From the NCBI GenBank assembly GCA_977017575.1, contig CDRNVI010000040.1, positions 1 through 64,000 on the forward strand: DNA of 64,000 bases, written 5' to 3'. This document shows positions 8,251-59,083 of this stretch, piece by piece. Position 1 is the first letter of the stretch; every line of letters begins with the position of its first letter. The position numbers and the translations under genes are program-made. Origin of the DNA: Paramoeba atlantica. Its lineage: Eukaryota > Protista > Discosea. Below the pieces are notes generated by a model that did no database searches, had not been told where the DNA came from, and was given only the letters and a program-made list of their open reading frames with translations.

Positions 8251-8402
8251 ATGGGCATGTTCACTCGGAGCCGAGCGAAAGATACTGGAGTAGCTCCAGT
8301 TGTCCAGCCTCTGCCAACGACCCGCCGCAGGAAGAAACCTACGGAGGAACGGCCTCGGCCGGCACCGTCTGAATCGCGAGCAACTGGACCGCCGCCGCTT
8401 GA
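8251..8402 (+). pseudogene. CRE-A ORF piece 1 (MGMFTRSRAK...GPPPL)
   Basis: ATG follows the SL relic; cut by the LINE1 insertion. Confidence 0.7.
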
Positions 8403-9354
8403 CCTTTCCTTATTGTAAGACCTTTCCTTATTGTAAGACCTTTCCTTATTGTAAGACCTTTCCTTATTGTAAGACCTTTCCTTATTGTAAGACCTTTCCT
8501 TATTGTAAGACCTTTCCTTATTGTAAGACCTTTCCTTATTGTAAGACCTTTCCTTATTGTAAGACCTTTCCTTATTGTAAGACCTTTCCTTATTGTAAGA
8601 CCTTTCCTTATTGTAAGACCTTTCCTTATTGTAAGACCCTTCCTTATTGTAAGACCTTTCCTTATTGTAAGACCTTTCCTTATTGTAAGACCTTTCCTTA
8701 TTGTAAGACCTTTCCTTATTGTAAGACCTTTCCTTATTGTAAGACCTTTCCTTATTGTAAGACCTTTCCTTATTGTAAGACCTTTCCTTATTGTAAGACC
8801 TTTCCTTATTGTAAGACCTTTCCTTATTGTAAGACCTTTCCTTATTGTAAGACCTTTCCTTATTGTAAGACCTTTCCTTATTGTAAGACCTTTCCTTATT
8901 GTAAGACCTTTCCTTATTGTAAGACCTTTCCTTATTGTAAGACCTTTCCTTATTGTAAGACCTTTCCTTATTGTAAGACCTTTCCTTATTGTAAGACCTT
9001 TCCTTATTGTAAGACCTTTCCTTATTGTAAGACCTTTCCTTATTGTAAGACCTTTCCTTATTGTAAGACCTTTCCTTATTGTAAGACCTTTCCTTATTGT
9101 AAGACCTTTCCTTATTGTAAGACCTTTCCTTATTGTAAGACCTTTCCTTATTGTAAGACCTTTCCTTATTGTAAGACCTTTCCTTATTGTAAGACCTTTC
9201 CTTATTGTAAGACCTTTCCTTATTGTAAGACCTTTCCTTATTGTAAGACCTTTCCTTATTGTAAGACCTTTCCTTATTGTAAGACCTTTCCTTATTGTAA
9301 GACCTTTCCTTATTGTAAGACCTTTCCTTATTGTAAGACCTTTCCTTATTGTAA
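8401..9354 (+). repeat. 18-bp tandem array (GACCTTTCCTTATTGTAA) x53, 5' part of LINE1
   Basis: 954 bp = 53 units; one substitution visible near 8640. Confidence 0.97.
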
Positions 9355-12300
9355 TCGTTATAATAAGGCCATGGATACCTCCGGCACGGTCAATGAGAGA
9401 AAGCGGTGTTCTGACCCGGTTGCTCTTATTGGTCGGTCCAGGTTAGGTCGGGGCGTCAATTTTTGGCCATCAAAGTCAAAGGTTGGCGTAGCAAAACTCC
9501 GTGATCGTGCGGTAACCAGTATGTCCAACACGATTCGTGCGGGGTCTCGTGTCGCTGTGGTCTGGAGCTGGTCGTTTGCTCAAAGGCTAAAGATGTGGCA
9601 AGGGACTGCGAAATTTCGGGCCAAAAATGGTCTATGGCGTATTCGCTATGACTGTTGTCCTGGAGTATCGTTTCCTTTTCCCCCTATAGACCAACGAGTA
9701 GCGATCTGTGCGGGCCGCGTGGCACCCCCCCGTAAGAAGAAATGTAGGAAGCACCGTTCTGCGCGACTTCCCCGTCGGAATGGCTCCCCGGCGGTCGAGG
9801 AATCTAACCCCATTGCCACGAACAAGACGCTACATCTTGCAACTCTAAACGTCACTACCCTGAAACTAAAGGGAACTGATTATTTCTCCCTTCGCAAATC
9901 GACACGACTACGGGAAATTATGTCGTACATGGTCGAGCGAGGCCTTGCCCTCTGTTGCCTTCAGGAAACTCGTGTACAAACCGATATCATTCAAAACATT
10001 GCACATCAGACAATTCGTCATGGAAAGTTCGTATTTCATGTTTATATTCAAGGCGCTATCAAAGGTTACGGTGGACTCATGATTCTAAGCCTATTTGAGC
10101 CTGCTCTTGTGTCGCGAATCAGTGATCGGATCCAACAGGTTACTCTAGACTTACCAAAATTCCACGGTGTGCTATTCAATGTTTATGCCCCCACGGCGGT
10201 GGCAAAAGATGACGTAAAGGAGAAATTTTGCAATGATCTACGTGATGCATGGTATCTTAGTAATGCGAAAATAAAACTTGTTCTGGGGGATCTTAATGCG
10301 CCACTGACAGATAAGTGTCAGCAAATAATGCGTAAAAATAAGGCACAACATCGGCTTACCAATTTACTGTCTGAGCTTGGGGCTCGCGCGGCACATACAT
10401 CCTGCCCAAGCAGAAAGAAGTGGACTTATACTTTTCAAAATGGAACTGTAAAACAACTAGACCATATTCTTGTCAACAAACGTTTCGTCACTACCTTACA
10501 TGGCCACAGAGTTCTCCAACCCCCGGTGCCGACTCGACATCAAATAGTAACAGTAAAAACTAAGTTTCGTTGGAAAGCTTCAGTAAATGACGGTAGCTTG
10601 CGATTACCGTGGTATCAGTTAAAGGATCCACAAATATGTATGGACTTCATACGCCGTGTGAAAGAGAACTACACCGAACATGCGGAGATAGTTGGGATGA
10701 AAAGAAGACGAAATGAGCCAAACCAGAAAATGTCAACCGAAATGCCTGTGATATTTCCAAGTGATATTTTGTTGGATAAATTGGAAAAAGCAATTATCAT
10801 GGCTGCTGAATCTATACCAACGAAGGAGGAAAACATAAACATGTTTGCTTCAAACGATGAAACTACTACACAGTTGCGAATCCGTGACATTTTCCGTACG
10901 TCTCAAAGTCCGCAGAGGTTCGATTCTCTAGTAAAAGAACATAGCATCACCGTGAATGAAAATATCACTCAAGAATGCCTGTCTCTACAACAAAACTTTC
11001 AAAGATACAAACGTTCTTCTTGGAGACATGTTAAAATGATGGCTGGGCACACTTCATCACGCCTCAGACCGCCAGGAAAAACAAAAAGCGAACAATTATG
11101 TAATGTGCGATTACACTTTCAGAATACTGTGCAACTAAAGGAGGTAGACAACAAGATCAAATTTGCGGAAGCGCCAAAGTCGTTTATCCCTATATCTGAT
11201 GGACCGTTTGATCTCAATGAATTGACGACTGCTCTTAAAGATATGGCAACTGGTAAAGCACCAGGCATTGACTCGATTCCAATTGAAGCCTTACGAGTAC
11301 TGAACAGCGATCCGTTCATACAATCTATTCTTCTACATTTAATTAATATGGTTCGTGAGAGCGGAAGAGCTCCACAGACATGGAAACGAGTTATCCAAGT
11401 CCCAGTTCCGAAAAAAGGCGACTTAGGCAACATAAACAATTGGAGACCAATATGTCTAATAGTGCACGCTGCAAAACTCATGAACCGTATGATACTAAAT
11501 CGAATTCTTCCTACAGTGGATGCTCAATTAAGTGATTGTCAATACGGATTCCGACCCAATAGAGCAACAACGGGAGCACAAGCAACCCTCATTGAGTTGT
11601 GCCAGAAAGCGTCTCGTGAGAATCCTGGTGTTGCGCTAGGCTTCGTGGATTTCCGTCAGGCATTTCCTTCAGTCAGCTTTTTCTCCATTCGTGCTGCACT
11701 GGAAGCCTTTCACATCCCGCAGCATCTCAGCAGCATGATAATGTCTATGTATGAAAAAACAGAAGCAGTTGTACGATGCAAAAGCGGAGTTACTGATACG
11801 TTTCCGATCCAGTGTGGCACACTTCAAGGTGATGTTTTGGCCCCTGTCCTATTCCTCATGGTTCTGGATCGAGTCATGGCTGAAGTGTATAAGGAAAATG
11901 AGTTCGGACTTATCTTGCGAAGGGCGGGCACAAAAAGACAAGGAAAGCCTGCGCAATGTCTAAATTATTTAGCATACGCGGATGATTTAGTGCTCATATG
12001 TCCCTCTCTTACTAATTTGAATCGCGTTATGGAAAGACTGGAACAAACAGCTGCGAAAGTCAACTTACGTCTCAACATTGGTGTAAATAAAACTGCGTGG
12101 ATGGCAGTAGGTCAAGTGAATGACGCACAAGGTGACTTGATTCTAACGAATGGGGGGTTGGTGCCTCGAATCACCGAATATCGATACTTGGGGTTGAAAA
12201 TTACTAATAAGGGTGTCATTGTAAACTTTGAAGACCGAATTAACTTAGCGTGGGCTGCAACACATCGCCTACAGTCATTATGGAAATCAGGCCTCACGCT

Positions 12301-14111
12301 TGTCACAAAATTTCACTTATTCGAATCTCTGGTTTCACCTTTATTGCTGTATGGCTGTGGAAACTTTTCCCTAATAAAAAAAGACGCTGATTTAATTGAC
12401 TGTGAAGTGAACCGAATGAGAAGACTAGCGCTCGGGGTTCGTACTTGGGATGGTAAAAGAGGTACACCATGTGATGCACTATATGGGAACAGAATGCGAC
12501 TTTCTAACGCATGTCGAGTCCTCCGAGTTCAAATGCTAGGACACCTGATCCGCGGCAATAATCCCTTCAAATCGGTAATGCTATGGCGCAAAGCAACAAG
12601 AAAGAAATATCGTCCCACTCTATCAGAGGCATGTGCTGAAGACATGTAACTAGATGTCGAAGATCTCAATGTCCTAGCGGGAGATCGGGATTGGTGGGCG
12701 TCGAGAGTTAAATTTTTGCGTGAATATCTTGAATCTCACAAATCCTACATGGTTTTCGGCTCTAGATCCTGGAAGAAGGTATGCCAGGAATTAGATACTA
12801 CCACCTACAAAGTACTCGAAGGAATTGAAGAAGGCACGGACCATTCTCCTCTCTCAGCTGATTCCGAACACATATACGTAGATGGGGCTGTCAGTTCAGA
12901 AGCAGGAAAACCAGCCGCGGGTTCGGGGATAGTTATTGTTAATTCAAATGGTGTAAGAACCAGACAACACGTTTTACCACCGGAATGCACTTCACCGGAT
13001 CGGGCTGAACTTCGCTCCTTTCTTTTAGGCATTCAGGCAGCTTCGTCTTCTACGAGGAACACAGTTATACATACTGATTCTCATTATGTATGGGACTGGT
13101 ATCATAATGTTAGGGTTCGTTTTTCAATCATTGGATACGGTGGCATGCCAAATGCTGACCTACTCACGCAGATACAAGGAGCAATTAAAGAGCGTTGTAC
13201 AGGTAGTAGTCTCTACGTTATTAAAGTGCGGGCACACTGCGGGAATTCCTTCAATGAAAAAGCTGATGAAATAGCACGCAAAGCACAGAGAACAGCTGCA
13301 CGTCGTTTTTCATGCGTCATTCACACGCAAAGGGAGGGAAACAAATCTAATCACGGTCAAAAAAGGGAGCATGATCTCCAAGAGAAATCTCCACACAAAG
13401 TGAATATGAAAAAAGGGAAACTGAAAAATACAGAAGAAGGCAGCACAGTCAGGATTGCTCGTTCACTCAACCCAGGAGCTAATACCGGGGATCCAGTAAC
13501 GTTTTCTCAGTACAAGACATCACGGGGTAGACTGACGAATGCCCCCATTTTTGTGAAGAAAAGCCGCTATATGTAATCGAAATTTGCTGTGTATAACTTT
13601 GCGCATTAATCTGGAACGCTTATTTTCAGGAGTGTTATGTCCTCTTGGTACATTTATTTATCAACGCGTTAATAATATTCTGGAGCATTTATGTATATTT
13701 CATTGCTAAATATCCGTACTCATCGAAAACACTGAGTGGGATACGTAATATTGATAGTATACGGTGGTTTATTTGGCAAGCAGAGAACAAGTTGGCGCTG
13801 AGTTGCTCTTCGGGCATATGACGCGGCAATGAAGGCAAGAACTTGCGTACTGCTTAACCCTTGGTACCGCGTTGAATATCGATGGTGAAATATTGAGCTG
13901 AAAATGGCTAATTGTAAGATTGTTCTGGTTTTCTTGTGCTCGTTTGTACACGTTTTCTCCTAATTGCAAAAGAAGATAGGTCTCCTACCTCCATTCGCAT
14001 AATCCGCGGTTTGGCCTATTCGTGATGTGGATAGATGTTTCAGTGCGCTAAGGAGAGTGTACGTTGAAAGTTGCATGTGTATAGTCTTTTGTTATTATTA
14101 TTATTATTATT
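8403..14111 (+). mobile_element. LINE1: RTE-like APE-RT-RNase H non-LTR retrotransposon with 5' 18-mer array and (TTA)n tail
   Basis: CTTGA duplicated at 8398-8402 and 14112-14116; (TTA)n at ~14092-14111; single ORF. Confidence 0.85.
9371..13576 (+). pseudogene. LINE1 polyprotein (small N-terminal module, APE, RT, RNase H); one in-frame TAA at 12647-12649
   Basis: APE: ATLNV, LQETR, FNVYAPT, GDLNA, QLDHIL; RT: KAPGID, NWRPICL, QYGFRP, QGDVLAP, YADD; RNase H: YVDGA, RAEL, HTDSHY, VRAHCGNSFNEKAD, in the same frame after the stop. Confidence 0.85.
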
Positions 14112-14863
14112 CTTGAACTTTCGGCGCCGCCGCCGCCGTCACCGCAGTCGCTGCCGAGCGATCGACACAAGAAATCTCCTGAGGGTCCGTCTGCGACAAC
14201 ATTGCCGCGATCACAACTATTGCCTCCGTCGCAAAAGTCTCCGTCGCAACCGCGATCGTCTCCGACAGCACCGCAAGCGCAAACGTCGGAATCGCCAGCA
14301 CCGCCGCGATCGCCCCCGTCGCAAAGTCCTGCGAAGCGATCGCAACCGCCTCCGCAGCGGCAACCTCAACCGTCCCCGCCGCGACCGTCTACGCCACAAC
14401 CGTCCCCGTCTACGCCGCAACCATCTCCGCCGCAACCGCGACCGTTTCCGCCCCAAGCATCTTCGTCGCAAGAGCTACCGGTCCCGTTACCGCTACCGCA
14501 ACCGACAAACACACAGCACTCCGAGCGGTTGCGAGCCACCCTGCAGAAAAAGAGGGCTTTCGTTTTCCCTCCACAAAAGACTCCTTTGCCGCCACCACGG
14601 AATTCCCCATCTTCGAAATCCCCGACATCGTCGACGCCGCCACCCTCATCAGAATCTTGCATTTCACCTGGATCGCAATCTCCGTCGCATCCTCTGAACG
14701 AACGGAACGAAGGACGAGCTGAGGAACGGAAAGAAGCGAAAGATAAAAAAGCCATTGAAGCATCGAAACAAACCAATTCACACATTCGCATTCGTCGACC
14801 GACCGGCTCTCGATTCACGTTTCCTACAGCTAGCACCGTGATTCAGACCATGAAACCAATTGC
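14112..14863 (+). pseudogene. CRE-A ORF piece 2 (Pro/Ser-rich)
   Basis: In frame with pieces 1 and 3 once the insertions are removed. Confidence 0.7.
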
Positions 14864-38250: not shown

Positions 38251-38856
38251 AGTCACACATTACTCGTCACACATGACGACCGGCTGGATTCATTCCGAAC
38301 TGGTCGTTTGCGCCCATGAACATCTGGTCGGGATGCTGGTCGGGTCGACAGAGTCTATGCTCACGCCTAGTCCGTCAGGGCTAGGTACCCCAAGTGAGGT
38401 AGTACACGGGTAGTGAATCTCCTCCCCGTCGACCAGCATCCTGTTTCGCGACCGTGTCGCTGTCGACACAGGCCCGCGCCTGCGCCCTCCCATATAGCAA
38501 GGGAAGGGTTCACAAGTCAGGCCGTGGAGAGGTCGAAAGACCCGGTCCGGGACGCGCGAATGGATTGGGTCTGTATTGCTTGTTTTAGTTTTTACTGTTT
38601 CTTGTTTGTATTATATACTTAGGGGAGATTAAATTGCTAGTTTTGGGCTGAGAGAAAAAACAATAGGTACATCTGTGGAAACAAAAAGATTTGCTAAAAA
38701 AATTTTCAAATTGCTAATTTGATTGTTTGTTTTCAACTCGTATCCCCCCCCCCCCCAATGGACCTACTTGGTTCGTCTACTGGGTCAAAATATAGAGGCA
38801 ATGCCGCGTTTTATACTTCTCCCCCCTTATTAAAAAAAAAAAAAAAAAAAAAAAAA
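38251..38856 (+). other. Orphan 3' UTR + poly(A) of a CRE family II element
   Basis: Shares a 50-nt block with 55864-55913 and a 52-nt terminal block with 52036-52087; A25 at 38832-38856. Confidence 0.7.
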
Positions 38857-40512
38857 CTTCCACCTGATCCCTCATCTGAATTATTGGAGCGCGCTGACAA
38901 GATTGCCTGCGACATTAAGAACTCTACAGAAGGCGAAACGCCAGACACAGGACACCAGAATGCTACCACCGAAGAAGAACTGTTCTCCAGTGTCCGCCCG
39001 ACGGAAAGCCTCGAGTTCCAATTCGAAGGAGCCAATTCCTCTTCACTCAGCCAATTAAAGTCCTCTAGCAAGGCTGTGAAGGAGAAGTACGAGCGCCATA
39101 ACCGCAGGGTAGGCTGTGCCGAATATGACTATGCTGATAACAGGCTAGTTTTTCCTGATCTCACGCCTCCTGATCTTCGCTTCTCAGTAAAGGGTAGCAG
39201 TAAAGGCCGTAAAAAGAAGAAACGCCCGAAGGGCATCAATCTTTCTCAGCTGGATGCAGTGTCCGGGGCCGACAGCGAGGAACGCGACAATATAGAGTCC
39301 AGCGCGAATTCACCCGGGCCACGCACTCATGCCACCGGAGTCATGGACAGCCCGTCTATCAAATTGTCCCAAAAGGAACAGAACACTAACACCCCCACGG
39401 GTAAGCGTAAACGTCACGTGCAGGTGTCGAAACCAGGGCCACGCGATTCCTCAGATACCGAAAGGCTCAATCAACCCCCCAATACCACTCCAGAAAAGCC
39501 ACCTACAGTCAATGGAAACACGCGGAAATGTCCTTCTCAGGGATGTGCATGGCAAACTGTGCCTCACGGGGGCCAATGGCAATCCTTTTATAACCACGTA
39601 TCCCACAGACACGGGGACGAGGTGCCTGATACCTGGTGGAACGAGGAGGGACGTTTCCGATGCAGGGATTGCAACAGGCACTACAACCTAAGCAAACAGG
39701 TCACCCATGCCGAAAACTGCGCTTTCCGCTGCTCTTCTCCCCCACCTATCTCCGAACCTACACAGACAGGGGGCGACCCGAGGGACAACCCTGCATTTTT
39801 TGCCGCACAAGCCGTCGCCGAACCCCTTCCCTCCCTGGCGTCAATCTGTTCGACACCTCTCAACACATGCAAAGACATTCCCAACAGCTGTCGCCAGGGG
39901 TGGGCGAAAGTCTTCTGTGAGTGTCTCTCTTCCGCTGTACGAGACAATACAGTTGAGGCCTGGACTCTTCTCGCCATGCTACCGAAATGCGTACTACCGG
40001 CACCTCATCGTGGGGGGAGCAGGGCAAAACTATCGTACGCCTCGCACGTTCGGAAGTGTCTCGCCCGGTGGTCACGGAAAGAATTTCTCCCCCTTTGGAA
40101 CGAAACAATTGCGAGCCTACAACACAAAAAACGCGTCGCACAAGCACAGAGTCCGGAGGACGAGATAACCAAATCTGCTATGCGAGCTGAAAGACTCGTT
40201 CGCGACTCGGAACTATCTCGAGCTATGGCTGCCCTAACCTCTGAACCAGTAGCCCCGTATGACGATGATACTTACACTAAACTCCAAGCTAAGCATCCAT
40301 CCCGACTCGCTACGTCGGTGAAACCCCTCAGTTCTTCGACGGAAATGGGACCAAAACCACTTCGAGCCACAGAGGAAGACGTAACGCAGGCTCTTGCAAC
40401 TTTTCACCGGGGGTCATCGGGTGGCGCTTTTGGGCTACGCCCTGAACACGTACAAGTGGCACTAGAGTACCACCATGACGGCCGTACGGATCCATTGGGT
40501 ACACTGACCCAT

Positions 40513-43500
40513 TTAAGACCACTTTTTGTATTAAGACCACTTTTTGTATTAAGACCACTTTTTGTATTAAGACCACTTTTTGTATTAAGACCACTTTTTG
40601 TATTAAGACCACTTTTTGTATTAAGACCACTTTTTGTATTAAGACCACTTTTTGTATTAAGACCACTTTTTGTATTAAGACCACTTTTTGTATTAAGACC
40701 ACTTTTTGTATTAAGACCACTTTTTGTATTAAGACCACTTTTTGTATTAAGACCACTTTTTGTATTAAGACCACTTTTTGTATTAAGACCACTTTTTGTA
40801 TTAAGACCACTTTTTGTATTAAGACCACTTTTTGTATTAAGACCACTTTTTGTATTAAGACCACTTTTTGTATTAAGACCACTTTTTGTATTAAGACCAC
40901 TTTTTGTATTAAGACCACTTTTTGTATTAAGACCACTTTTTGTATTAAGACCACTTTTTGTATTAAGACCACTTTTTGTATTAAGACCACTTTTTGTATT
41001 AAGACCACTTTTTGTATTAAGACCACTTTTTGTATTAAGACCACTTTTGTATTAAGACCACTTTTTGTATTAAGACCACTTTTTGTATTAAGACCACTTT
41101 TTGTATTAAGACCACTTTTTGTATTAAGACCACTTTTTGTATTAAGACCACTTTTTGTATTAAGACCACTTTTTGTATTAAGACCACTTTTTGTATTAAG
41201 ACCACTTTTTGTATTAAGACCACTTTTTGTATTAAGACCACTTTTTGTATTAAGACCACTTTTTGTATTAAGACCACTTTTTGTATTAAGACCACTTTTT
41301 GTATTAAGACCACTTTTTGTATTAAGACCACTTTTTGTATTAAGACCACTTTTTGTATTAAGACCACTTTTTGTATTAAGACCACTTTTTGTATTAAGAC
41401 CACTTTTTGTATTAAGACCACTTTTTGTATTAAGACCACTTTTTGTATTAAGACCACTTTTTGTATTAAGACCACTTTTTGTATTAAGACCACTTTTTGT
41501 ATTAAGACCACTTTTTGTATTAAGACCACTTTTTGTATTAAGACCACTTTTTGTATTAAGACCACTTTTTGTATTAAGACCACTTTTTGTATTAAGACCA
41601 CTTTTTGTATTAAGACCACTTTTTGTATTAAGACCACTTTTTGTATTAAGACCACTTTTTGTATTAAGACCACTTTTTGTATTAAGACCACTTTTTGTAT
41701 TAAGACCACTTTTTGTATTAAGACCACTTTTTGTATTAAGACCACTTTTTGTATTAAGACCACTTTTTGTATTAAGACCACTTTTTGTATTAAGACCACT
41801 TTTTGTATTAAGACCACTTTTTGTATTAAGACCACTTTTTGTATTAAGACCACTTTTTGTATTAAGACCACTTTTTGTATTAAGACCACTTTTTGTATTA
41901 AGACCACTTTTTGTATTAAGACCACTTTTTGTATTAAGACCACTTTTTGTATTAAGACCACTTTTTGTATTAAGACCACTTTTTGTATTAAGACCACTTT
42001 TTGTATTAAGACCACTTTTTGTATTAAGACCACTTTTTGTATTAAGACCACTTTTTGTATTAAGACCACTTTTTGTATTAAGACCACTTTTTGTATTAAG
42101 ACCACTTTTTGTATTAAGACCACTTTTTGTATTAAGACCACTTTTTGTATTAAGACCACTTTTTGTATTAAGACCACTTTTTGTATTAAGACCACTTTTT
42201 GTATTAAGACCACTTTTTGTATTAAGACCACTTTTTGTATTAAGACCACTTTTTGTATTAAGACCACTTTTTGTATTAAGACCACTTTTTGTATTAAGAC
42301 CACTTTTTGTATTAAGACCACTTTTTGTATTAAGACCACTTTTTGTATTAAGACCACTTTTTGTATTAAGACCACTTTTTGTATTAAGACCACTTTTTGT
42401 ATTAAGACCACTTTTTGTATTAAGACCACTTTTTGTATTAAGACCACTTTTTGTATTAAGACCACTTTTTGTATTAAGACCACTTTTTGTATTAAGACCA
42501 CTTTTTGTATTAAGACCACTTTTTGTATTAAGACCACTTTTTGTATTAAGACCACTTTTTGTATTAAGACCACTTTTTGTATTAAGACCACTTTTTGTAT
42601 TAAGACCACTTTTTGTATTAAGACCACTTTTTGTATTAAGACCACTTTTTGTATTAAGACCACTTTTTGTATTAAGACCACTTTTTGTATTAAGACCACT
42701 TTTTGTATTAAGACCACTTTTTGTATTAAGACCACTTTTTGTATTAAGACCACTTTTTGTATTAAGACCACTTTTTGTATTAAGACCACTTTTTGTATTA
42801 AGACCACTTTTTGTATTAAGACCACTTTTTGTATTAAGACCACTTTTTGTATTAAGACCACTTTTTGTATTAAGACCACTTTTTGTATTAAGACCACTTT
42901 TTGTATTAAGACCACTTTTTGTATTAAGACCACTTTTTGTATTAAGACCACTTTTTGTATTAAGACCACTTTTTGTATTAAGACCACTTTTTGTATTAAG
43001 ACCACTTTTTGTATTAAGACCACTTTTTGTATTAAGACCACTTTTTGTATTAAGACCACTTTTTGTATTAAGACCACTTTTTGTATTAAGACCACTTTTT
43101 GTATTAAGACCACTTTTTGTATTAAGACCACTTTTTGTATTAAGACCACTTTTTGTATTAAGACCACTTTTTGTATTAAGACCACTTTTTGTATTAAGAC
43201 CACTTTTTGTATTAAGACCACTTTTTGTATTAAGACCACTTTTTGTATTAAGACCACTTTTTGTATTAAGACCACTTTTTGTATTAAGACCACTTTTTGT
43301 ATTAAGACCACTTTTTGTATTAAGACCACTTTTGTATTAAGACCACTTTTTGTATTAAGACCACTTTTTGTATTAAGACCACTTTTTGTATTAAGACCAC
43401 TTTTTGTATTAAGACCACTTTTTGTATTAAGACCACTTTTTGTATTAAGACCACTTTTTGTATTAAGACCACTTTTTGTATTAAGACCACTTTTTGTATT

Positions 43501-44744
43501 AAGACCACTTTTTGTATTAAGACCACTTTTTGTATTAAGACCACTTTTTGTATTAAGACCACTTTTTGTATTAAGACCACTTTTTGTATTAAGACCACTT
43601 TTTGTATTAAGACCACTTTTTGTATTAAGACCACTTTTTGTATTAAGACCACTTTTTGTATTAAGACCACTTTTTGTATTAAGACCACTTTTTGTATTAA
43701 GACCACTTTTTGTATTAAGACCACTTTTTGTATTAAGACCACTTTTTGTATTAAGACCACTTTTTGTATTAAGACCACTTTTTGTATTAAGACCACTTTT
43801 TGTATTAAGACCACTTTTTGTATTAAGACCACTTTTTGTATTAAGACCACTTTTTGTATTAAGACCACTTTTTGTATTAAGACCACTTTTTGTATTAAGA
43901 CCACTTTTTGTATTAAGACCACTTTTTGTATTAAGACCACTTTTTGTATTAAGACCACTTTTTGTATTAAGACCACTTTTTGTATTAAGACCACTTTTTG
44001 TATTAAGACCACTTTTTGTATTAAGACCACTTTTTGTATTAAGACCACTTTTTGTATTAAGACCACTTTTTGTATTAAGACCACTTTTTGTATTAAGACC
44101 ACTTTTTGTATTAAGACCACTTTTTGTATTAAGACCACTTTTTGTATTAAGACCACTTTTTGTATTAAGACCACTTTTTGTATTAAGACCACTTTTTGTA
44201 TTAAGACCACTTTTTGTATTAAGACCACTTTTTGTATTAAGACCACTTTTTGTATTAAGACCACTTTTTGTATTAAGACCACTTTTTGTATTAAGACCAC
44301 TTTTTGTATTAAGACCACTTTTTGTATTAAGACCACTTTTTGTATTAAGACCACTTTTTGTATTAAGACCACTTTTTGTATTAAGACCACTTTTTGTATT
44401 AAGACCACTTTTTGTATTAAGACCACTTTTTGTATTAAGACCACTTTTTGTATTAAGACCACTTTTTGTATTAAGACCACTTTTTGTATTAAGACCACTT
44501 TTTGTATTAAGACCACTTTTTGTATTAAGACCACTTTTTGTATTAAGACCACTTTTTGTATTAAGACCACTTTTTGTATTAAGACCACTTTTTGTATTAA
44601 GACCACTTTTTGTATTAAGACCACTTTTTGTATTAAGACCACTTTTTGTATTAAGACCACTTTTTGTATTAAGACCACTTTTTGTATTAAGACCACTTTT
44701 TGTATTAAGACCACTTTTTGTATTAAGACCACTTTTTGTATTAA
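40513..44744 (+). repeat. 18-bp tandem array (TTAAGACCACTTTTTGTA) x~235
   Basis: 4232 bp; only two single-T deletions visible (~41045, ~43330). Confidence 0.97.
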
Positions 44745-44758
44745 TACGTTGGTACAAA

Positions 44759-47700
44759 ATGGCGGAGGCCTCCGGACCGTTCGAAAGTGTGTTGGAAGTC
44801 TGTGGCAAACTTCGGACGGCCAGGTGTGGTCGGGGCAACCTTTTTCTGCCTCCACAGCAGAGGGGGGTTGGGACAAAACTCCGGCAGCGGGCCCTTTTAC
44901 AGATGTCAAAGGTTTTGGCTGTGGGAAAACGCGTGGCTGTTGTTTGGTGTATGGCTTATAACGAACGTATTACACTCTGGGAAGGGGTGGTTCACTCATC
45001 GCTTGATGGGTCTGGTTGGCTCGTCAAGTACGACTTGATGAATGGGCGCCTTCTCCCGTTTCCTCCGAGAGATGATCGTATCCATGTGCTAGGCGGCAGA
45101 GTTGGACTGCTTCCAAAATCTTTGCGCAAACGTAATCGGAAACGCAAATCCTGCTTTCGGCGTGGCTACCGAGAGCAGAGACCCAAGATCAAAGCTATGA
45201 GAGAGGGGTTTGCAGTAAGCACCATGAATGTAGATACTTTAAAGTGTAAAACCACAGACGAGTTTGCTCTACGTAAATGTTTCCGTTTGCATCAAGCTGT
45301 AGAGTTCATGCGAAGTTACGGCGTAACAATAATGGCCTTGCAGGAAACGCGACTATCGTTCAAGAGCGAGGAACCGATCATTCATCGTAGGCTCTATCTG
45401 GCTGGCATTAGTGTTAATATATATATTATGAGTGCAATAAAGGGCTATAACGGAATGGCAATGCTGAGTCTGCAACCCATGGGTGTTGAAAAGATCAATG
45501 ATCGCATTATGAAAGGAACAATGCATATTGGAAAGATGAAGGCGTGTATATTTAATGTTTACTCCCCGACGGCTGGTGCAAAGAAAGAGAAGCAAGAATC
45601 GTTTGATGAGGAGCTATTTGATGCTTGGCATGATTCACAATGTTCGCTAAAGATAATATGCGGAGACATGAACGCACCTTTGCAAGATCCAAATGGCAGA
45701 AAATGTTGTTCGGAAAGAGCGCAAGAATTTCGCAAATTCTTGGTAACCCTTGGATCTAAATCGGCTCATCAATGTTGCAGCGCAGAAAGAAAGTGGACTT
45801 ATAGGTTTCCACCTACGCCGAAACACCCTGATGGTCTAACAAAACAGCTTGATCATATCATAATAAATTCCCGTTTCAGCTCAGCATTTCGGTATCAGAA
45901 GGTGCTTTTGGCTCCCATACCTACGAGACACTGTGCAGTAATAGCAGGATTAAATATAAAATGGAGAGTGGCATGCAAACCTGGTAAGTTACAACCGTTT
46001 TGGGGATCCTTGAGAAACGAAACCATATGTGATACATTCGTGAAAAGTGTGGAGGAGTCAATTCAGGGGGGAAATAAACGGTCACGAGAAGGGTCAATTG
46101 GCCCCGCTTTATGGGATAAGCTATCGTCCGCAGTCAACTCCGCCGCAGAGAAATTACCCAGGAAAATTGCCAATATTGGAAAAGCTCCTGACTCGGAAAC
46201 TGACTCGCATTCCCTTGATATGAAAACTATTGTGCAAATTGCTCGAAATCGAAGGACTTTCGATACCTTTGCTCGAGAACACGGAAAAATGATTGAAGAA
46301 TGCGTGAAAGAAGAATGTGAAGTGATCCAAGAAAAGCTATATAAATGTCCAAAAAGCGCGTATCAAGCAATTCGCTATATTGTAGGGGAAAATCGAAAAG
46401 TATTCTCCATGTTCGGTGAAAATGTTCGAGACAGTATGTGCAGAGTGAGAGGACATTTTCAGGCGATAGGTAATCAATTAAATCAAATTTCCGAACCGGT
46501 AAACTTCCCTAACTGTAATAAAAGCTTAATTGGTATTGAGGATACGGAATTTACCCTAAAGGAGCTCAGAATTTCTCTGCAAAAAGTCAAATCTGGAAAA
46601 GCTTCAGGCTCCGACAACATTCCTATTGAGGCTCTCTCTACATTGGCTCGGAGCGAAGAAGCACTTGGCATGCTCTTGAACATAATAAATGAAGTAATGT
46701 GTACCGGTGCCGCGGCGGATAAATGGAAGATGATTCTGCAAGTGCCACTTCCAAAGAAAGGGAATCTCAATGATCTTACAAATTGGAGACCGATATGCAT
46801 TGTAAACCATGTGGTAAAGGTAATGAACCGGATGGTACTAGAGCGTATACAACCAGCTGTTGAGAATATGCTTCGCTCAAATCAGTTTGGATTTCGCCCG
46901 CACCGATCCACTGCCGGCGCACAGGCAACTTTCGTGGAAATAGCTACTAAAGCTTCGAGGGGAGAAGGTGTTGCGGTAGCGTTTGTTGACTTTAAGCAGG
47001 CATTTCCTTCCGTTACTTTCTCTGCAATACGAGATGCGCTGAGAGCATTCCACATACCGGAAAATATTACTAAAGTTATTATGAGCATGTATGAAGGCCT
47101 GAAATCTTATGTGAGGACGCCTCATGGTGACACCGAATCGTTTTCTATTGAAAATGGTACTCTACAAGGGGATGTGCTCGCGCCATATCTCTTTATTATG
47201 GTCCTCGACAGGATTATGGCAGAGGCCATTGACGCGAAGGGGTTGGGTGTCATTGCTTATTCCACCGGGACGAAGAGTCGCGGCGAAAAGCACCTCCGAA
47301 TTTCTGATGTGGCATATGCAGATGACGTAGTTCTCTTCGCTTCTTCTAGGTCTGAACTCTCCGAAATGCTAGAAAACCTGTGCAAGTATGCAAAGAGGGC
47401 AAACCTTCAGGTAAATCTGGGCAAAAACAAGACCGCATGGATGGTTCTAGGAAAAATTGATGACATGACAGCTCCCCTTCTAGTCCCAAGTGTTGGAGAA
47501 ATCCCCCGAGTATACAAATATAAATATCTTGGAAGTACACAAGAGAATGAAAATCGTCATGTAGCCCCACAAGAACGCATTCGTCTAGGATGGGCCACAA
47601 TGCATAAACTTCATGCGATATGGAACTCACCCATTCAAGTCGCAAGTCGGTTAAAAATATTTCGAACACTTGTTATGCCTGTTATTAATTACAACTGCGG

Positions 47701-49060: not shown

Positions 49061-52000
49061 TTTTGGAAGCCCAAAAGTTGAATGGAGTATCATTTTATTT
49101 ATTTTGTTTATTTATTTTTACTTTTATTTTATATTCAATAATGCGATCAATTGGTCTGTTTCAGCAGTTGAAGAGGGGGTTGTGAGACGAAGGGTTGTTC
49201 ATATATTTATATATATATTTATAAATTGTATTTATACGTTATTATTTGTTTTAGTTGTGTTTCGCCAGCAGATAAGGTGGCCAAGTGTATGGGAGGTGAG
49301 TTGGAGGACATTTTCGCCCTATAGGGCCATTCTCATAAGAAAGTAATGAGGATGCACGAGTTCTTGGCTGCAGATGGACTCTTTGCGCGTAAATTTTATG
49401 TGAGTTTACATGGAGAAGTGTTTATGTTTATGGTGTAAATTCTAAACCCCCCAGCTGATACATATGTATCAGTGTCTTTGTTGTTTTGTTGTTGTGGGTA
49501 CACTGACCGACTTTACGAACCACATGCTCGCGGGGCAAGTGCCGCTCGAAGTTCAGTGCTATTTCGCTGGAGGCCGCTTATGCGCGTTAAAGAAAGGGGA
49601 GCGCGACGTGCGGCCAATAGCGGCCGGAGAGACGCTCCGTCGCCTGGTGAGCAAAGTCGCCTGTCTCTCCGCCAAAACAACAGCTCGTAAGCTCTTCAAA
49701 GGACACCAATACGGTGTGGCCACTCCAGCAGGGTCTGAGCGCGTCATCCATCGATGCAGACAGACATTCGATTCTCACGTTGATGACAATGACTTCATTC
49801 TATGCAAAATTGACCTGAAAAACGCATTTAACCATGTCTCACGGGACTGGATCATTGCCCTTACTCGCGAACACTTTCCCGCTCTCAGTCACTACGTAGA
49901 TTGGTGTTACTCTTCGGACAGCCTACTTACTTTCGGAACACGCACCATTCCGTCTTCTGAAGGAGTGCAACAAGGCGACCCCTTAGGTCCTCTCCTTTTT
50001 TCCCTGGTTCTGAGAGAAGTAGCGGCGGAAATTCACGCAGTAGCCCCAATGCTCGATTTGAATCTGTGGTATCTGGACGACGGGGTGCTGGCTGGATCAT
50101 CTGCTGATGTGCGGCACGCATTCGACGTGCTGGAAATCAAAGGACCACAACGGGGACTCCATATCAACGCCGCTAAATGTGAACTCGCCTTACACCCCTC
50201 ATCATCTCCTCGCGCCTCCGTTTTCCCTGACATCCCTGGCCCGAATAAAAATTTCGAGGGTAATTTCAACATTTTAGGTAGCCCAGTCGGATCCACTGAA
50301 TACTGTCATAAATTCCATTTGGACAATGCCTTCGAACTGGCCCAAGATTCCCTAACCGCTATAACTTTGCTCGAGGATCCCCAGATCGCTCTCTCCCTCA
50401 TCCGGCATTGTACAGGCTTCTGCAAGATGGTCTACTCTCTCCGTACCACCCCGACATCTGCACTGCAAGATATTTGTCGACGCCTGGACGACACTGTTCA
50501 GTCCACTCTCGAAAACTTTTTCCACCCACTTGGCGATGACGCCCGGCGACAGACACAACGAGACAAGCGCTTCGGAGGGCTAGGGCTCCGTTCAGCAGAG
50601 GAACATTCCTCTTCTGCTTACGTGGCCTCCGTGGCATTCGCATCAAGGAAGGATGGCTGGGCCCCCACCGAAGCGAAAGGTTTCGAAGAAGCAGTGAGCG
50701 ATGTCAACAATCGCGCTGGACTAAATCTGGTAGACGGCGAAAATGGCACAATACCCAAGAGCATGGTTGTGTCAGATCGTTCCCTCTTTAGTACTATCGA
50801 AGCGAGCGAATCTAGAAATGAAGCGGTAGTTCCCAGACAACGGGATCTCAGTCACTCGATCTCTTCCCAGGAATACAACAACGCGCTTAATACCGCTGAC
50901 CCGCGGACGAGGGCCCGATGGATCTCTGAAACGGGGGAAGGAGCGTCGGAGTGGGCATTTGTTTTGCCTTCCAAGAAGAACGGTCACGCATATACCCCGA
51001 CAGAGTTCCGGATGCTGGTACGCTGGTGGCTTGGGGAGAACATATACCCCGGCACCCGACCTTGCCCCATGGACAAATGCACGCAGCCGCTTGGTCCAGA
51101 GGGGGATCACGCGATGTCGTGCAAAAGCGGGCATGGTATCATTTCCCGACACAATGCTCTGGCAACACAGTTTGCGGCGGAGTGTTCCAAGGCCGGGCTC
51201 GCCCCCAAACGAGAGGTCAGCCTGGGAAACAAGGGTCCGGGGGGCACCCTCACTAGGCCTGCAGATGTCTTTATAGACAGCCACCTCGGTCGGTCCCTTG
51301 TACTCGACTTCGCTGTCACCCATGTCCAGCAACAAAAGTATACGGACACAGTCCGTGACGCTAACTGGGTGACGGCGGGGTCGTTCGCGGAACAATATGC
51401 CACCGTGAACAAGAGCATGCAACGCGCAGAGGCGACTGCAGCACACTTTAAGTTCGGAGCTATGGTCGTAGAATCCTACGGCTCGTGGTGTCCCAGCGCA
51501 ATGTCTGTTCTCCGAGAGGTCGCAGTAGCTAGGGCGGCTAAATCGGGCAGTGACATATCGAAGGGGGCGGCCTTACATCAGATTCTCACAGCTCTGAATG
51601 TAACACTGATGAGGTCGCAGGCCCGAATGCTAGTCTTGCGATTACCCGCAACGGGCCCCGACCTGGCTCTCCTGGGGTACGGGAAGGAAGAGTAGCAAGC
51701 GGCCAAGAGGTGGAAAACCTCGTGGGCAAGGGTGGGGCGGTAAGTGTCGTGGTTGCTTTGCTTGGTTCCTGGTTCTGCAGGGGGGTTGTGGCCAGCGTCG
51801 GACGGTCCTGCGGGCAATAAGGTCCGGGGTAGTGAGAGAGGTGGCAGGTTGAGGTTTGCTCGTTTCGGGTTTGCTTGGGCATAGATTGCTTGTTTTTATT
51901 GTTATTGTTTTTATTGTTCTTATACTTACGGGAGATCGAATTGCTAGTTTTGGGCTCCAAAATATGAAATTGCTAATTTGATTGCTTGTTAAAAAAAAAA

Positions 52001-57240: not shown

Positions 57241-59083
57241 GTTGACAAACTTTATCCTCACGCCTTGGTTTTCGAAAACAAGGTTCCCCAATGTGAGATA
57301 AAGGTGAGTAAAGTTTTCTTTACTCTGCGATTAGCGCCTTAATGTTTTTAACCGCGTCATTGTTGACACGGCCGTACACCACGCCTAGTTGCTCCACACT
57401 TCTAGGTCCCAAGTTGGTATATGGGCAGAGGTTGAAAGCGTAACCTGTGTAGCTCGTGTGAGCTTGTAAAGGGCGTGGTAATGGACTGGTCATCTATTGC
57501 TATCGTTATCCTTTTGTGAGCTCTGCATGTTTTGATATTTTCTATCTATTAATATTTGACTACGTGATTGGGCATTTTGCGTTTATTGTGACGTGTGTGT
57601 GGGCAGGTTGGCCGAGGGTTCCGGTGGGGGGGAACCCCGTTAACAGAGTAACATTGATTGTGTTGTTTTATGCAGGCTTGTTTCTTTTCCATCTTTGTGC
57701 GTGTGAAATGAATGAATGATACGTTGTGTCATTTTGAATTACGATTGAGCTATTCATAGTTGTTCATTTATTCATATATGTTATCAGTGTATATGTTTCC
57801 AGGGAGCCCCTCGGCGTGGATTTCTAATAGTTCACGTTTTGAAATTTAGCCGAGGGGCGGCTATATATTTGCCTGCTGGCCCTTCGGGGCACATAATTTT
57901 CTCAAATTATGATGTAGTATTCTCTAATTGCATGGAGGGGGGTGTTTACTCGTTTGTTATATTCTTGTTAGGTTGTTATTTTGTTACGTTTAAAGTTTTG
58001 TGCCCACCCACCGAGCCCCCAGCCATTTGGCCGAGGGTTCCGGTGGGGGGGAACCCCGTTAACAGAGTGACATTGATTGTGTTGTTTTATGCAGGCTTGT
58101 TTCTTTTCCATCTTTGTGCGTGTGAAATGAATGAATGATACGTTGTGTCATTTTGAATTACGATTGAGCTATTCATAGTTGTTCATTTATTCATATATGT
58201 TATCAGTGTATATGTTTCCAGGGAGCCCCTCGGCGTGGATTTCTAATAGTTCACGTTTTGAAATTTAGCCGAGGGGCGGCTATATATTTGCCTGCTGGCC
58301 CTTCGGGGCACATAATTTTCTCAAATTATGATGTAGTATTCTCTAATTGCATGGAGGGGGGTGTTTACTCGTTTGTTATATTCTTGTTAGGTTGTTATTT
58401 TGTTACGTTTAAAGTTTTGTGCCCACCCACCGAGCCCCCAGCCATTTGGCCGAGGGTTCCGGTGGGGGGGAACCCCGTTAACAGAGTGACATTGATTGTG
58501 TTGTTTTATGCAGGCTTGTTTCTTTTCCATCTTTGTGCGTGTGAAATGAATGAATGATACGTTGTGTCATTTTGAATTACGATTGAGCTATTCATAGTTG
58601 TTCATTTATTCATATATGTTATCAGTGTATATGTTTCCAGGGAGCCCCTCGGCGTGGATTTCTAATAGTTCACGTTTTGAAATTTAGCCGAGGGGCGGCT
58701 ATATATTTGCCTGCTGGCCCTTCGGGGCACATAATTTTCTCAAATTATGATGTAGTATTCTCTAATTGCATGGAGGGGGGTGTTTACTCGTTTGTTATAT
58801 TCTTGTTAGGTTGTTATTTTGTTACGTTTAAAGTTTTGTGCCCACCCACCGAGCCCCCAGCCATTTGGCCGAGGGTTCCGGTGGGGGGGAACCCCGTTAA
58901 CAGAGTGACATTGATTGTGTTGTTTTATGCAGGCTTGTTTCTTTTCCATCTTTGTGCGTGTGAAATGAATGAATGATACGTTGTGTCATTTTGAATTACG
59001 ATTGAGCTATTCATAGTTGTTCATTTATTCATATACACGTTATCAGTGTATATGTTTCCAGGGAGCCCCTCGGCGTGGATTTC
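57115..59083 (+). mobile_element. V2 3' end only, with amplified terminal repeats
   Basis: Matches ~24110-25230 but carries B-(A-spacer-B)x3. Confidence 0.85.
57608..59083 (+). repeat. 419-bp tandem of V2 split direct repeats
   Basis: B at 57608, 58027, 58446, 58865; A at 57825, 58244, 58663. Confidence 0.92.

Follow-up and report, generated by a model that had tools for sequence, protein, structure and literature searches.

In mouse L1, a long interspersed nuclear element (LINE), copies vary in their number of tandem 5' monomers, which are promoter units of about 200 bp, and the origin of new units is unsettled. SLACS of Trypanosoma brucei, a kinetoplastid non-LTR element (one without long terminal repeats) specific for spliced-leader genes, also carries 5' tandem repeats, and dinoflagellate retrogenes bear relict spliced-leader stacks, short 5' units left by repeated retroposition. 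Here we describe a LINE of Paramoeba atlantica, LINE-A, that has an 18-bp unit repeated 235 times ahead of its open reading frame (ORF). The window that we analyzed is a stretch of 64,000 nucleotides (GenBank assembly GCA_977017575.1, contig CDRNVI010000040.1, positions 1 to 64,000, forward strand). Like the mouse L1 monomers, the LINE-A units stand at the 5' end and vary in number, but they are only 18 nt long, are the terminal piece of an RNA fold and extend to tens of kilobases. Both LINE-A and SLACS have 5' repeats, but the units of SLACS are far longer and are not tied to a ribozyme strand. The feature is a LINE headed by a predicted ribozyme, whose predicted cut-site module forms a tandem array, and it is a satellite on dead copies of the element.

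Ribozymes resembling that of hepatitis delta virus (HDV), which cut 5' of their helix P1, are established in L1Tc/ingi, where the ribozyme lies at +1 (PMC3185411, PMC4035085), and in R2 (PMC3774820). LINE-A is like L1Tc/ingi, with its Pr77 and L1TcRz (PMC3185411, PMC4035085, PMC12278014), in being an APE-RT-RNase H LINE of a spliced-leader organism and in having a predicted HDV-type fold at its 5' end, where a cut at +1 would free element RNA from host co-transcripts; the likeness to Pr77 is one of description, not of Pr77 sequence. The single ORF with APE, RT and RNase H of the ingi/L1Tc clade is also present. Unlike L1Tc/ingi, however, LINE-A has a fold of about 157 nt that runs into the ORF, with a hairpin in J1/2, a long helix for L3 and no Rfam match; its tail is (TTG)n, not the poly(A) of that clade, and its P1 strand and hairpin arm are repeated from 1 to about 2000 times. 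In R2 a ribozyme likewise sets the 5' end (PMC3774820), and the R2 protein, a reverse transcriptase (RT), can extend complementary DNA (cDNA) on an extra template at 5' junctions (PMC11331408), but R2 is site-specific and uses a restriction-like endonuclease, and tandem repeats of a P1 strand were not described in the literature that we searched. The RT of DRT2, which makes long concatemers by template jumping (PMC12039810), and telomerase both copy a short template repeatedly into tandem DNA and so provide a model for array synthesis by an RT. They have terminal redundancy or a dedicated scaffold, whereas the redundancy in our LINE is at most 2 nt and much of the growth is chromosomal. HDV-like ribozymes at the 5' ends of LINEs are known, but we found no description of amplification of the substrate strand to tens of kilobases.

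The array in the window is part of the inserted element. The insertion as a whole is flanked by a perfect 14-bp target-site duplication, whose sequence TGGGTACACTGACC occurs exactly twice in the window (chance expectation 0), and deleting the insertion with one copy of the duplication yields an uninterrupted 1325-aa frame of a host retroelement. Tandem Repeats Finder reported a period of 18, 235.2 copies and 99% matches. When the array was tokenised, 231 of the 235 units were identical to GACCACTTTTTGTATTAA; there were no substitutions, and two units lacked one T of the T5 run. The plus strand of the array contains no ATG, and a gap of 14 nt, TACGTTGGTACAAA, separates it from the ATG of an intact ORF. 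A sequence-only reading of this stretch had already claimed about 235 nearly invariant units without an ATG, lying wholly between the duplication copies and ending 14 nt before the ATG of an intact APE-RT-RNase H ORF, and our analysis bears out each of these statements; its description of the setting as kinetoplastid we also judge to be correct. The array starts out of phase, with CAT and then TTAA, and looks like the product of an aborted or truncated cDNA.

We considered whether the array might be an artefact of assembly, or a free-standing satellite that merely abuts the LINE, either of which the sequence-only reading had named as grounds for giving up its interpretation. The length given for the window array is that of the assembly. 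On contig C63 (locus L048, C63:642769-651745) the 5' flank is that of the window, with 516 of 516 bases identical, and the array of 4234 bp is equal in length but has other single-base errors, while the LINE body departs from the window's at +659 and is followed by a different 3' flank without a target duplication; C63 would be a recombinant allele, the result of a LINE-LINE deletion, or a fork in the assembly. The unit is nevertheless truly highly repeated in the genome, because contigs consisting of the unit alone had a word depth of about 25,000 in three public read sets from the organism, where the LINE body had about 250, an excess of at least 100-fold in independent data. The perfect target duplication around the array, the presence of the same unit as the LINE's own 5' end in one- or two-unit copies at other sites, and the cognate arrays of other families all speak against an artefact or an unrelated satellite, which we regard as hardly credible.

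By sequence comparison, the array is a series of tandem copies of the LINE's own first 18 nt. The sequence joining array to ORF occurs 14 times in the 45.7-Mb assembly, and we read 13 loci. The LINE-A copies on C2, C27, C84 and C18 have about one unit, and those on C41, C59 and a duplicated locus shared by C52 and C8 have two; longer arrays have 34 units (C44), 181 units (C94) or 235 units (the window and C63), and arrays on C8 and C52 extend beyond the 10-kb loci read. Because the sequences upstream of these copies are unrelated to each other, a single unit forms the element's 5' terminus. The copies start within about 3 nt of G1, beginning with GACC, or with CCAC where there is microhomology to the target. 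Comparing array lengths among copies, as the sequence-only reading had proposed, gave unit numbers between 1 and about 2000 that are distributed more or less evenly on a logarithmic scale, although sizes outside the 10-kb loci read (arrays on C14, C20, C39, C43, C46, C47 and C147 and most of those on C8 and C52) derive from pattern positions and assume that the array is continuous.

The bodies of GACC-type copies are 99.1-99.9% identical, and of two sister copies, 3 differences apart over 4756 nt, one has 1 unit and the other 181. In a subfamily with about 80% identity over the first 600-750 nt, the arrays consist of GATCAC units throughout, and a third subfamily, with 74% identity, has two 16-nt units. 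The target duplications of the C41 and C94 copies are short or imperfect, and the C94 array starts with extra bases and the final 13 nt of a unit, again as in a truncated or aborted cDNA. One pair of GATC-type copies, its members about 42-50 kb apart, was seen both at C8:246950-296139 and C52:241500-301629 (loci L051, L053, L054 and L055), which are haplotypes or a segmental duplication.

The same layout recurs across several related LINE families, judging from their sequences, with the plan conserved and the sequence not. The window contains a second family, LINE-B, whose protein is 38% identical to that of LINE-A and whose 53 units precede a similarly designed head. This LINE lies in a GC-rich repeat-coding host gene, encodes its RNase H part in a different frame (ORF 12716-13576) and has a (TTA)n tail near 14250. 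A third unit type, GACAACGTTTTTTATTAA, forms 8.6 units at the head of LINE-C in locus L069, and a fourth type of 18-mer is known from orphan arrays. In every type, a 7-nt tail and the 11-nt 5' arm of an 11-bp hairpin make up the unit, whose right edge is always the 5' edge of the hairpin loop. The loop and 3' arm are present once, after the array, and the stem reaches the start codon or stops just short of it. Three of the six LINE-B arrays begin exactly at GACC, the same extra T stands ahead of two LINE-B array starts, and single extra bases occur exactly at some unit junctions. The genome thus offers natural constructs with 1, 2, 7, 34, 53, 181 and 235 or more units, in three to four unrelated unit sequences on one plan.

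Several smaller occurrences of these units were noted. In L069:3250-3480 the LINE-C array directly follows the poly(A) run of another element, an insertion into its tail. Short orphan arrays of 18-mers (A, C and D types) with no LINE head after them lie at L058:310-450, L069:7232-7353 and L069:1502-1557. Small runs of three to five LINE-B units without a following LINE-B start were found on C3, C9, C17, C18, C21, C22, C27 and C39, and these may come from other subfamilies or from non-autonomous elements with that head.

In RNAfold, the first 105 nt of LINE-A are closed by pairing of the GACCAC tail with GUGGUC (z = -3.5), and the partner switches along with the tail, to GACCU/AGGUC in LINE-B and GACAAC/GUUGUC in LINE-C. 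We wrote the structure on an alignment of six heads of four head types (alignment A2), in which a nested double pseudoknot with P1, P2, P3, P1.1 and P4 in canonical order could be drawn, with 92.8% of cells paired. Pairs changed on both sides numbered 20, against 5.9 +/- 1.9 in shuffles (0 of 500 reached 20), and sliding the helix partners gave 1-7 such changes. They were distributed over P1 (2), P1.1 (1, CC/GG to UC/GA in LINE-C), P3 with its extension (4, of which 1 in P3 itself), the J1/2 hairpin (5 of its 11 pairs, the last of which includes the A of the start codon) and P4 (8). LINE-C disrupts a purely nested alternative yet retains P3 and P1.1. The candidate catalytic C of J4/2 is present in the A, A3, B and C heads and in one A2 copy; it is G in L051 and T in L054, both old dead copies. 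From this model, the LINE head resembles an HDV ribozyme and would cleave itself just before the first base of the unit, because the unit supplies the 5' strand of P1 and HDV-like ribozymes cut 5' of P1. LINE-A copies, to within about 3 nt, and three of the six LINE-B arrays start at this predicted position. Such a head would widen the range of HDV folds to one with a helix instead of L3 and with a start codon within J1/2.

Two other structures were tried. RNAalifold on the LINE-A copies alone returned a different nested fold with 0 compensatory pairs, which was superseded when LINE-B and LINE-C were added, and a hammerhead formed from neighbouring units was rejected as its core motifs are absent. 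A covariance model of the nested part matched 148 sites genome-wide at E <= 0.001. Among these, matches recur at a regular spacing of 3420 bp on C71:30258-49437 and of 3740 bp on C61:1040-16172, and both series look like head-to-tail tandem arrays of whole short elements with their own heads.

The sequence-only reading had proposed instead that the units are a stack of trans-splice acceptors, in which each unit's pyrimidine tract and AG would receive the spliced leader, with spare units making good the acceptor that a retroposed copy loses. Dinoflagellate spliced-leader stacks would be the closest analogue, although the units there are truncated leaders and the LINE unit is unrelated to the leader; the idea that the unit is itself a leader relic was rejected for lack of any similarity. 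In the units of both LINE-A and LINE-B, AAG at the junction does follow a pyrimidine-rich stretch, the genome does have a spliced leader, and leader-bearing RNAs are often retroposed. RNAs spliced at such acceptors would have the leader joined to ACCACTTTTTG. The 3' end of the leader, ...CAGTTTCTGTACTTTGTTG, heads many retrocopies in this genome, but nowhere in the genome was it followed by the unit core within 30 nt. Copy and array starts also keep the G of the proposed AG, which splicing there would remove; the pyrimidine tract of LINE-A is only about 6 nt; and the conserved GACC is accounted for by P1 pairing with compensatory changes. We therefore set this reading aside as very improbable. 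Of the sequencing runs, four were DNA-type contig sets, and the one possible RNA run contained nothing of the element. Use of the AG for mRNAs that are only translated may be conceivable, but such an mRNA is not the RNA being copied. What survives of the proposal is the logic of a spare 5' module, as each unit starts with a predicted ribozyme cut site; the spares are not splice acceptors.

Array growth is in large part a chromosomal process. In the C52 array, variant spacings of 684, 900 and 756 bp repeat at an offset of 3330 bp, a higher-order period, and in the C94 array a variant unit pair recurs 71 units apart. In the C44 array, 25 consecutive 19-mers precede 9 consecutive 18-mers. The duplicates on C8 and C52 have arrays of different length and unit order, while their two-unit copy, which differs by one base, still has two units on both contigs. 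Among GATC-type copies, those bearing the largest arrays have an ORF that breaks off at 216-221 aa. Such higher-order blocks, and duplicated loci with arrays of unequal length, are features of a minisatellite or satellite that evolves by unequal exchange. Much of the growth is by unequal exchange or slippage in the chromosome and continues after the element has died, since the largest arrays are on dead copies and blocks of units are duplicated; the even spread of unit numbers on a log scale is as length-dependent growth predicts. This is a route by which a mobile element can seed satellite DNA, with 24-36 kb arrays on dead copies.

The first duplication points elsewhere. At the junction within arrays, the nucleotide just ahead of the hairpin loop is followed by the RNA's first base, and every family has amplified its own terminal 18 nt. 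Only in RNA or cDNA does the left edge of the unit coincide with a physical end, whereas in the chromosome it is an arbitrary point beside unrelated flank, so the founding step must take place at the RNA or cDNA stage. There are two possible seed routes, namely re-copying of the terminal segment by the RT, or a multi-unit leader carried in the RNA and variably cut. We prefer a seed made by rare RT re-copying, with chromosomal exchange driving the later growth. Self-priming by the 3' end of the cDNA was rejected as a source of units because it would yield inverted rather than direct repeats.

The following life cycle would join these observations, and we give a probability of about one half to the reading that the array is the amplified 5'-terminal module of the LINE, trimmed by a ribozyme, seeded by the RT and expanded by chromosomal exchange. 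The LINE would be transcribed within longer host transcripts. The ribozyme would cut at a unit start, mostly that of the last unit, which alone adjoins the core, so that the RNA begins with GACCAC and the upstream units are lost. At the end of first-strand synthesis the RT would sometimes re-copy the terminal 18 nt, by a jump from the RNA's 5' terminus back to the edge of the hairpin loop, leaving two or more units in the new copy. Unequal exchange or replication slippage could then expand or contract such an array, up to tens of kilobases, and the array would be harmless since the ribozyme trims it off the next RNA. We infer three parts of this scheme, namely self-cleavage, the re-copying step and the neutrality of the array.

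Several points weigh against this scheme. The Rfam ribozyme models gave no match to the LINE-A or LINE-B head at E values up to 10. The fold departs from known HDV-like ribozymes in that L3 is a CC bulge (UC in LINE-C) plus a conserved helix of about 48 nt rather than the usual short loop, and in that the partner of G1 is C rather than U; covariation is absent from P2, and as a whole it was counted on the same sequences from which the structure was derived. The proposed re-copying step has no realignment homology behind it (at most 2 nt). All six LINE-B copies have at least 7 units, which would be surprising were most cuts made at the last unit. The assumed continuity of the arrays that were sized from pattern positions belongs on the same side.

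In one alternative, the RT adds no units. The array would be transcribed and reverse-transcribed with the element, and any unit could act as P1, so that unit number varies among progeny; a cDNA stopping within the array would keep a full head and spare cut sites, and only the choice of cut site, truncation at the 5' end and chromosomal exchange would change the number. The P1 strand is present in every unit, the six LINE-B copies all have at least 7 units, and two LINE-A arrays begin within a unit and carry extra bases, as do 5'-truncated cDNAs made from a longer template. On C94 the 3.3-kb array has 7 variant unit kinds against 3 private changes in 4.8 kb of body, as if the array were the older. 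Variant patterns are not shared among arrays at independent loci, however, and the window array has 0 substitutions against 10 private ones in its body. Arrays of 24-36 kb cannot pass through RNA, single-unit lineages could never regain an array, and the first junction between a unit end and the RNA 5' end is left unexplained. We consider an inherited leader of this kind rather unlikely.

At the other extreme, whole arrays might be written by the RT. In one form, which we think doubtful, the RT-RNase H of the LINE would write arrays in the manner of telomerase or DRT2 from a free 18-nt template that the cDNA's hairpin has released, and the ribozyme would erase them in the next RNA generation. 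In another, less probable still, an array would be born at insertion as the RT jumps end-to-end repeatedly on an RNA remnant of about 18 nt, RNase H having removed all but roughly the last 18 nt and a cDNA hairpin stripping the fragment for re-use. The physical end of the RNA at the unit's left edge and the period of 18 in four unrelated unit sequences fit such copying, as does the perfect homogeneity of the window array. So do the single-base extras exactly at unit junctions, the extra T shared by two LINE-B array starts, and the variable (TTG)n or (TTA)n 3' tails, which suggest an RT prone to slippage; the DRT2 concatemers provide a precedent (PMC12039810). On the other hand, dead copies bear the largest arrays, and their block duplications go beyond copying unit by unit. 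Unit numbers that are even on a log scale from 1 to about 2000 favour multiplicative growth at the DNA level over a fixed probability per round. The C44 array, with 25 consecutive 19-mers and then 9 consecutive 18-mers, is unlike the product of a fixed template. The constant period is equally explained by a conserved structure, the 7-nt tail and 11-nt arm. LINE-A heads also do not have the terminal redundancy for a telomerase-like or DRT2-like realignment, as the redundancy is at most 2 nt (AC in the GACC type, A in the GATC type) and thus provides no realignment homology for repeated jumps. The suggestion of the sequence-only reading that an 18-nt template is reverse-transcribed iteratively therefore holds as the likely seed but not for much of the length, given the block duplications and the arrays of dead copies. 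The seeding step that we favour bears on whether the RT of a non-LTR element is able to copy its template's end again, and on how LINEs gain 5' repeats, which has been unsolved since the mouse L1 monomers.

Table 1. Positions of the LINE-A insertion, its predicted head and the comparator arrays. Positions are those of the window except where a contig is named; array sizes on named contigs are approximate, come from pattern positions and assume a continuous array.
Feature	Position	Strand	Remarks
Host retroelement ORF, upstream half, split by the insertion	38719-40509	+	downstream half 49509-51695, with RVT_1
5' copy of target-site duplication, TGGGTACACTGACC, 14 bp	40496-40509	+	host ORF intact again once insertion and one copy are deleted
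5' junction	40510-40516	+	3 extra bases CAT, then partial unit TTAA (final 4 nt of unit)
Array, 235 x 18 bp, unit GACCACTTTTTGTATTAA	40513-44744	+	unit = P1 5' strand + 1 nt + 5' arm of J1/2 hairpin
Last unit, the only one adjoining the predicted ribozyme core	44727-44744	+	predicted cut directly before G44727
Predicted HDV-like fold, about 157 nt	44727-44883	+	overlaps ORF start; from alignment and covariation
Predicted P1	44727-44732 with 44826-44831	+
Predicted J1/2 hairpin, 11 bp, loop UACG	44734-44759	+	5' arm = final 11 nt of unit
Predicted P2	44763-44767 with 44879-44883	+
Predicted P3	44768-44771 with 44822-44825	+
Predicted P1.1	44772-44773 with 44832-44833	+
Predicted inserted helix extending P3	44774-44821	+
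Predicted P4	44836-44870	+
Predicted J4/2	44871-44878	+	candidate catalytic C at 44874
Intact LINE-A ORF, 1433 aa	44759-49060	+	APE endonuclease, reverse transcriptase, RNase H; ATG at 44759
3' untranslated region	49061-49494	+	terminal (TTG)n-type tail at 49477-49494, no poly(A)
3' copy of target-site duplication	49495-49508	+
LINE-B comparator, 53 x 18 bp of GACCTTTCCTTATTGTAA, then head of same design	8401-9525	+	array 8401-9354; ATG at 9371
LINE-B array	C5		7 units
LINE-B array	C40		53 units
LINE-B array	C25		81 units
LINE-B array	C43		249 units
LINE-B array	C46		at least 657 units
LINE-B array	C47		807 units
GATC-type array	C52		about 36 kb
GATC-type array	C8		at least 24.5 kb

The LINE-A protein is encoded in a single ORF, with Pfam domains in the order Exo_endo_phos, RVT_1, RNase_H. 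Outside the species, its nearest database proteins are unnamed and 22-28% identical to it; otherwise the protein search returned only the same locus in another assembly (P0001, locus L069). A metagenome scan found two distant loci only, both without head and without array. The 3' tail is a variable (TTG)n among copies and (TG)n in one (3' ends in L045, L047, L048 and L050). In several LINE-A copies, 12-13 extra bases separate the 3' tail from the duplicated target. Elsewhere in the window, positions 57608-59083 hold another tandem repeat, of 3.5 copies of 419 bp with 99% identity.

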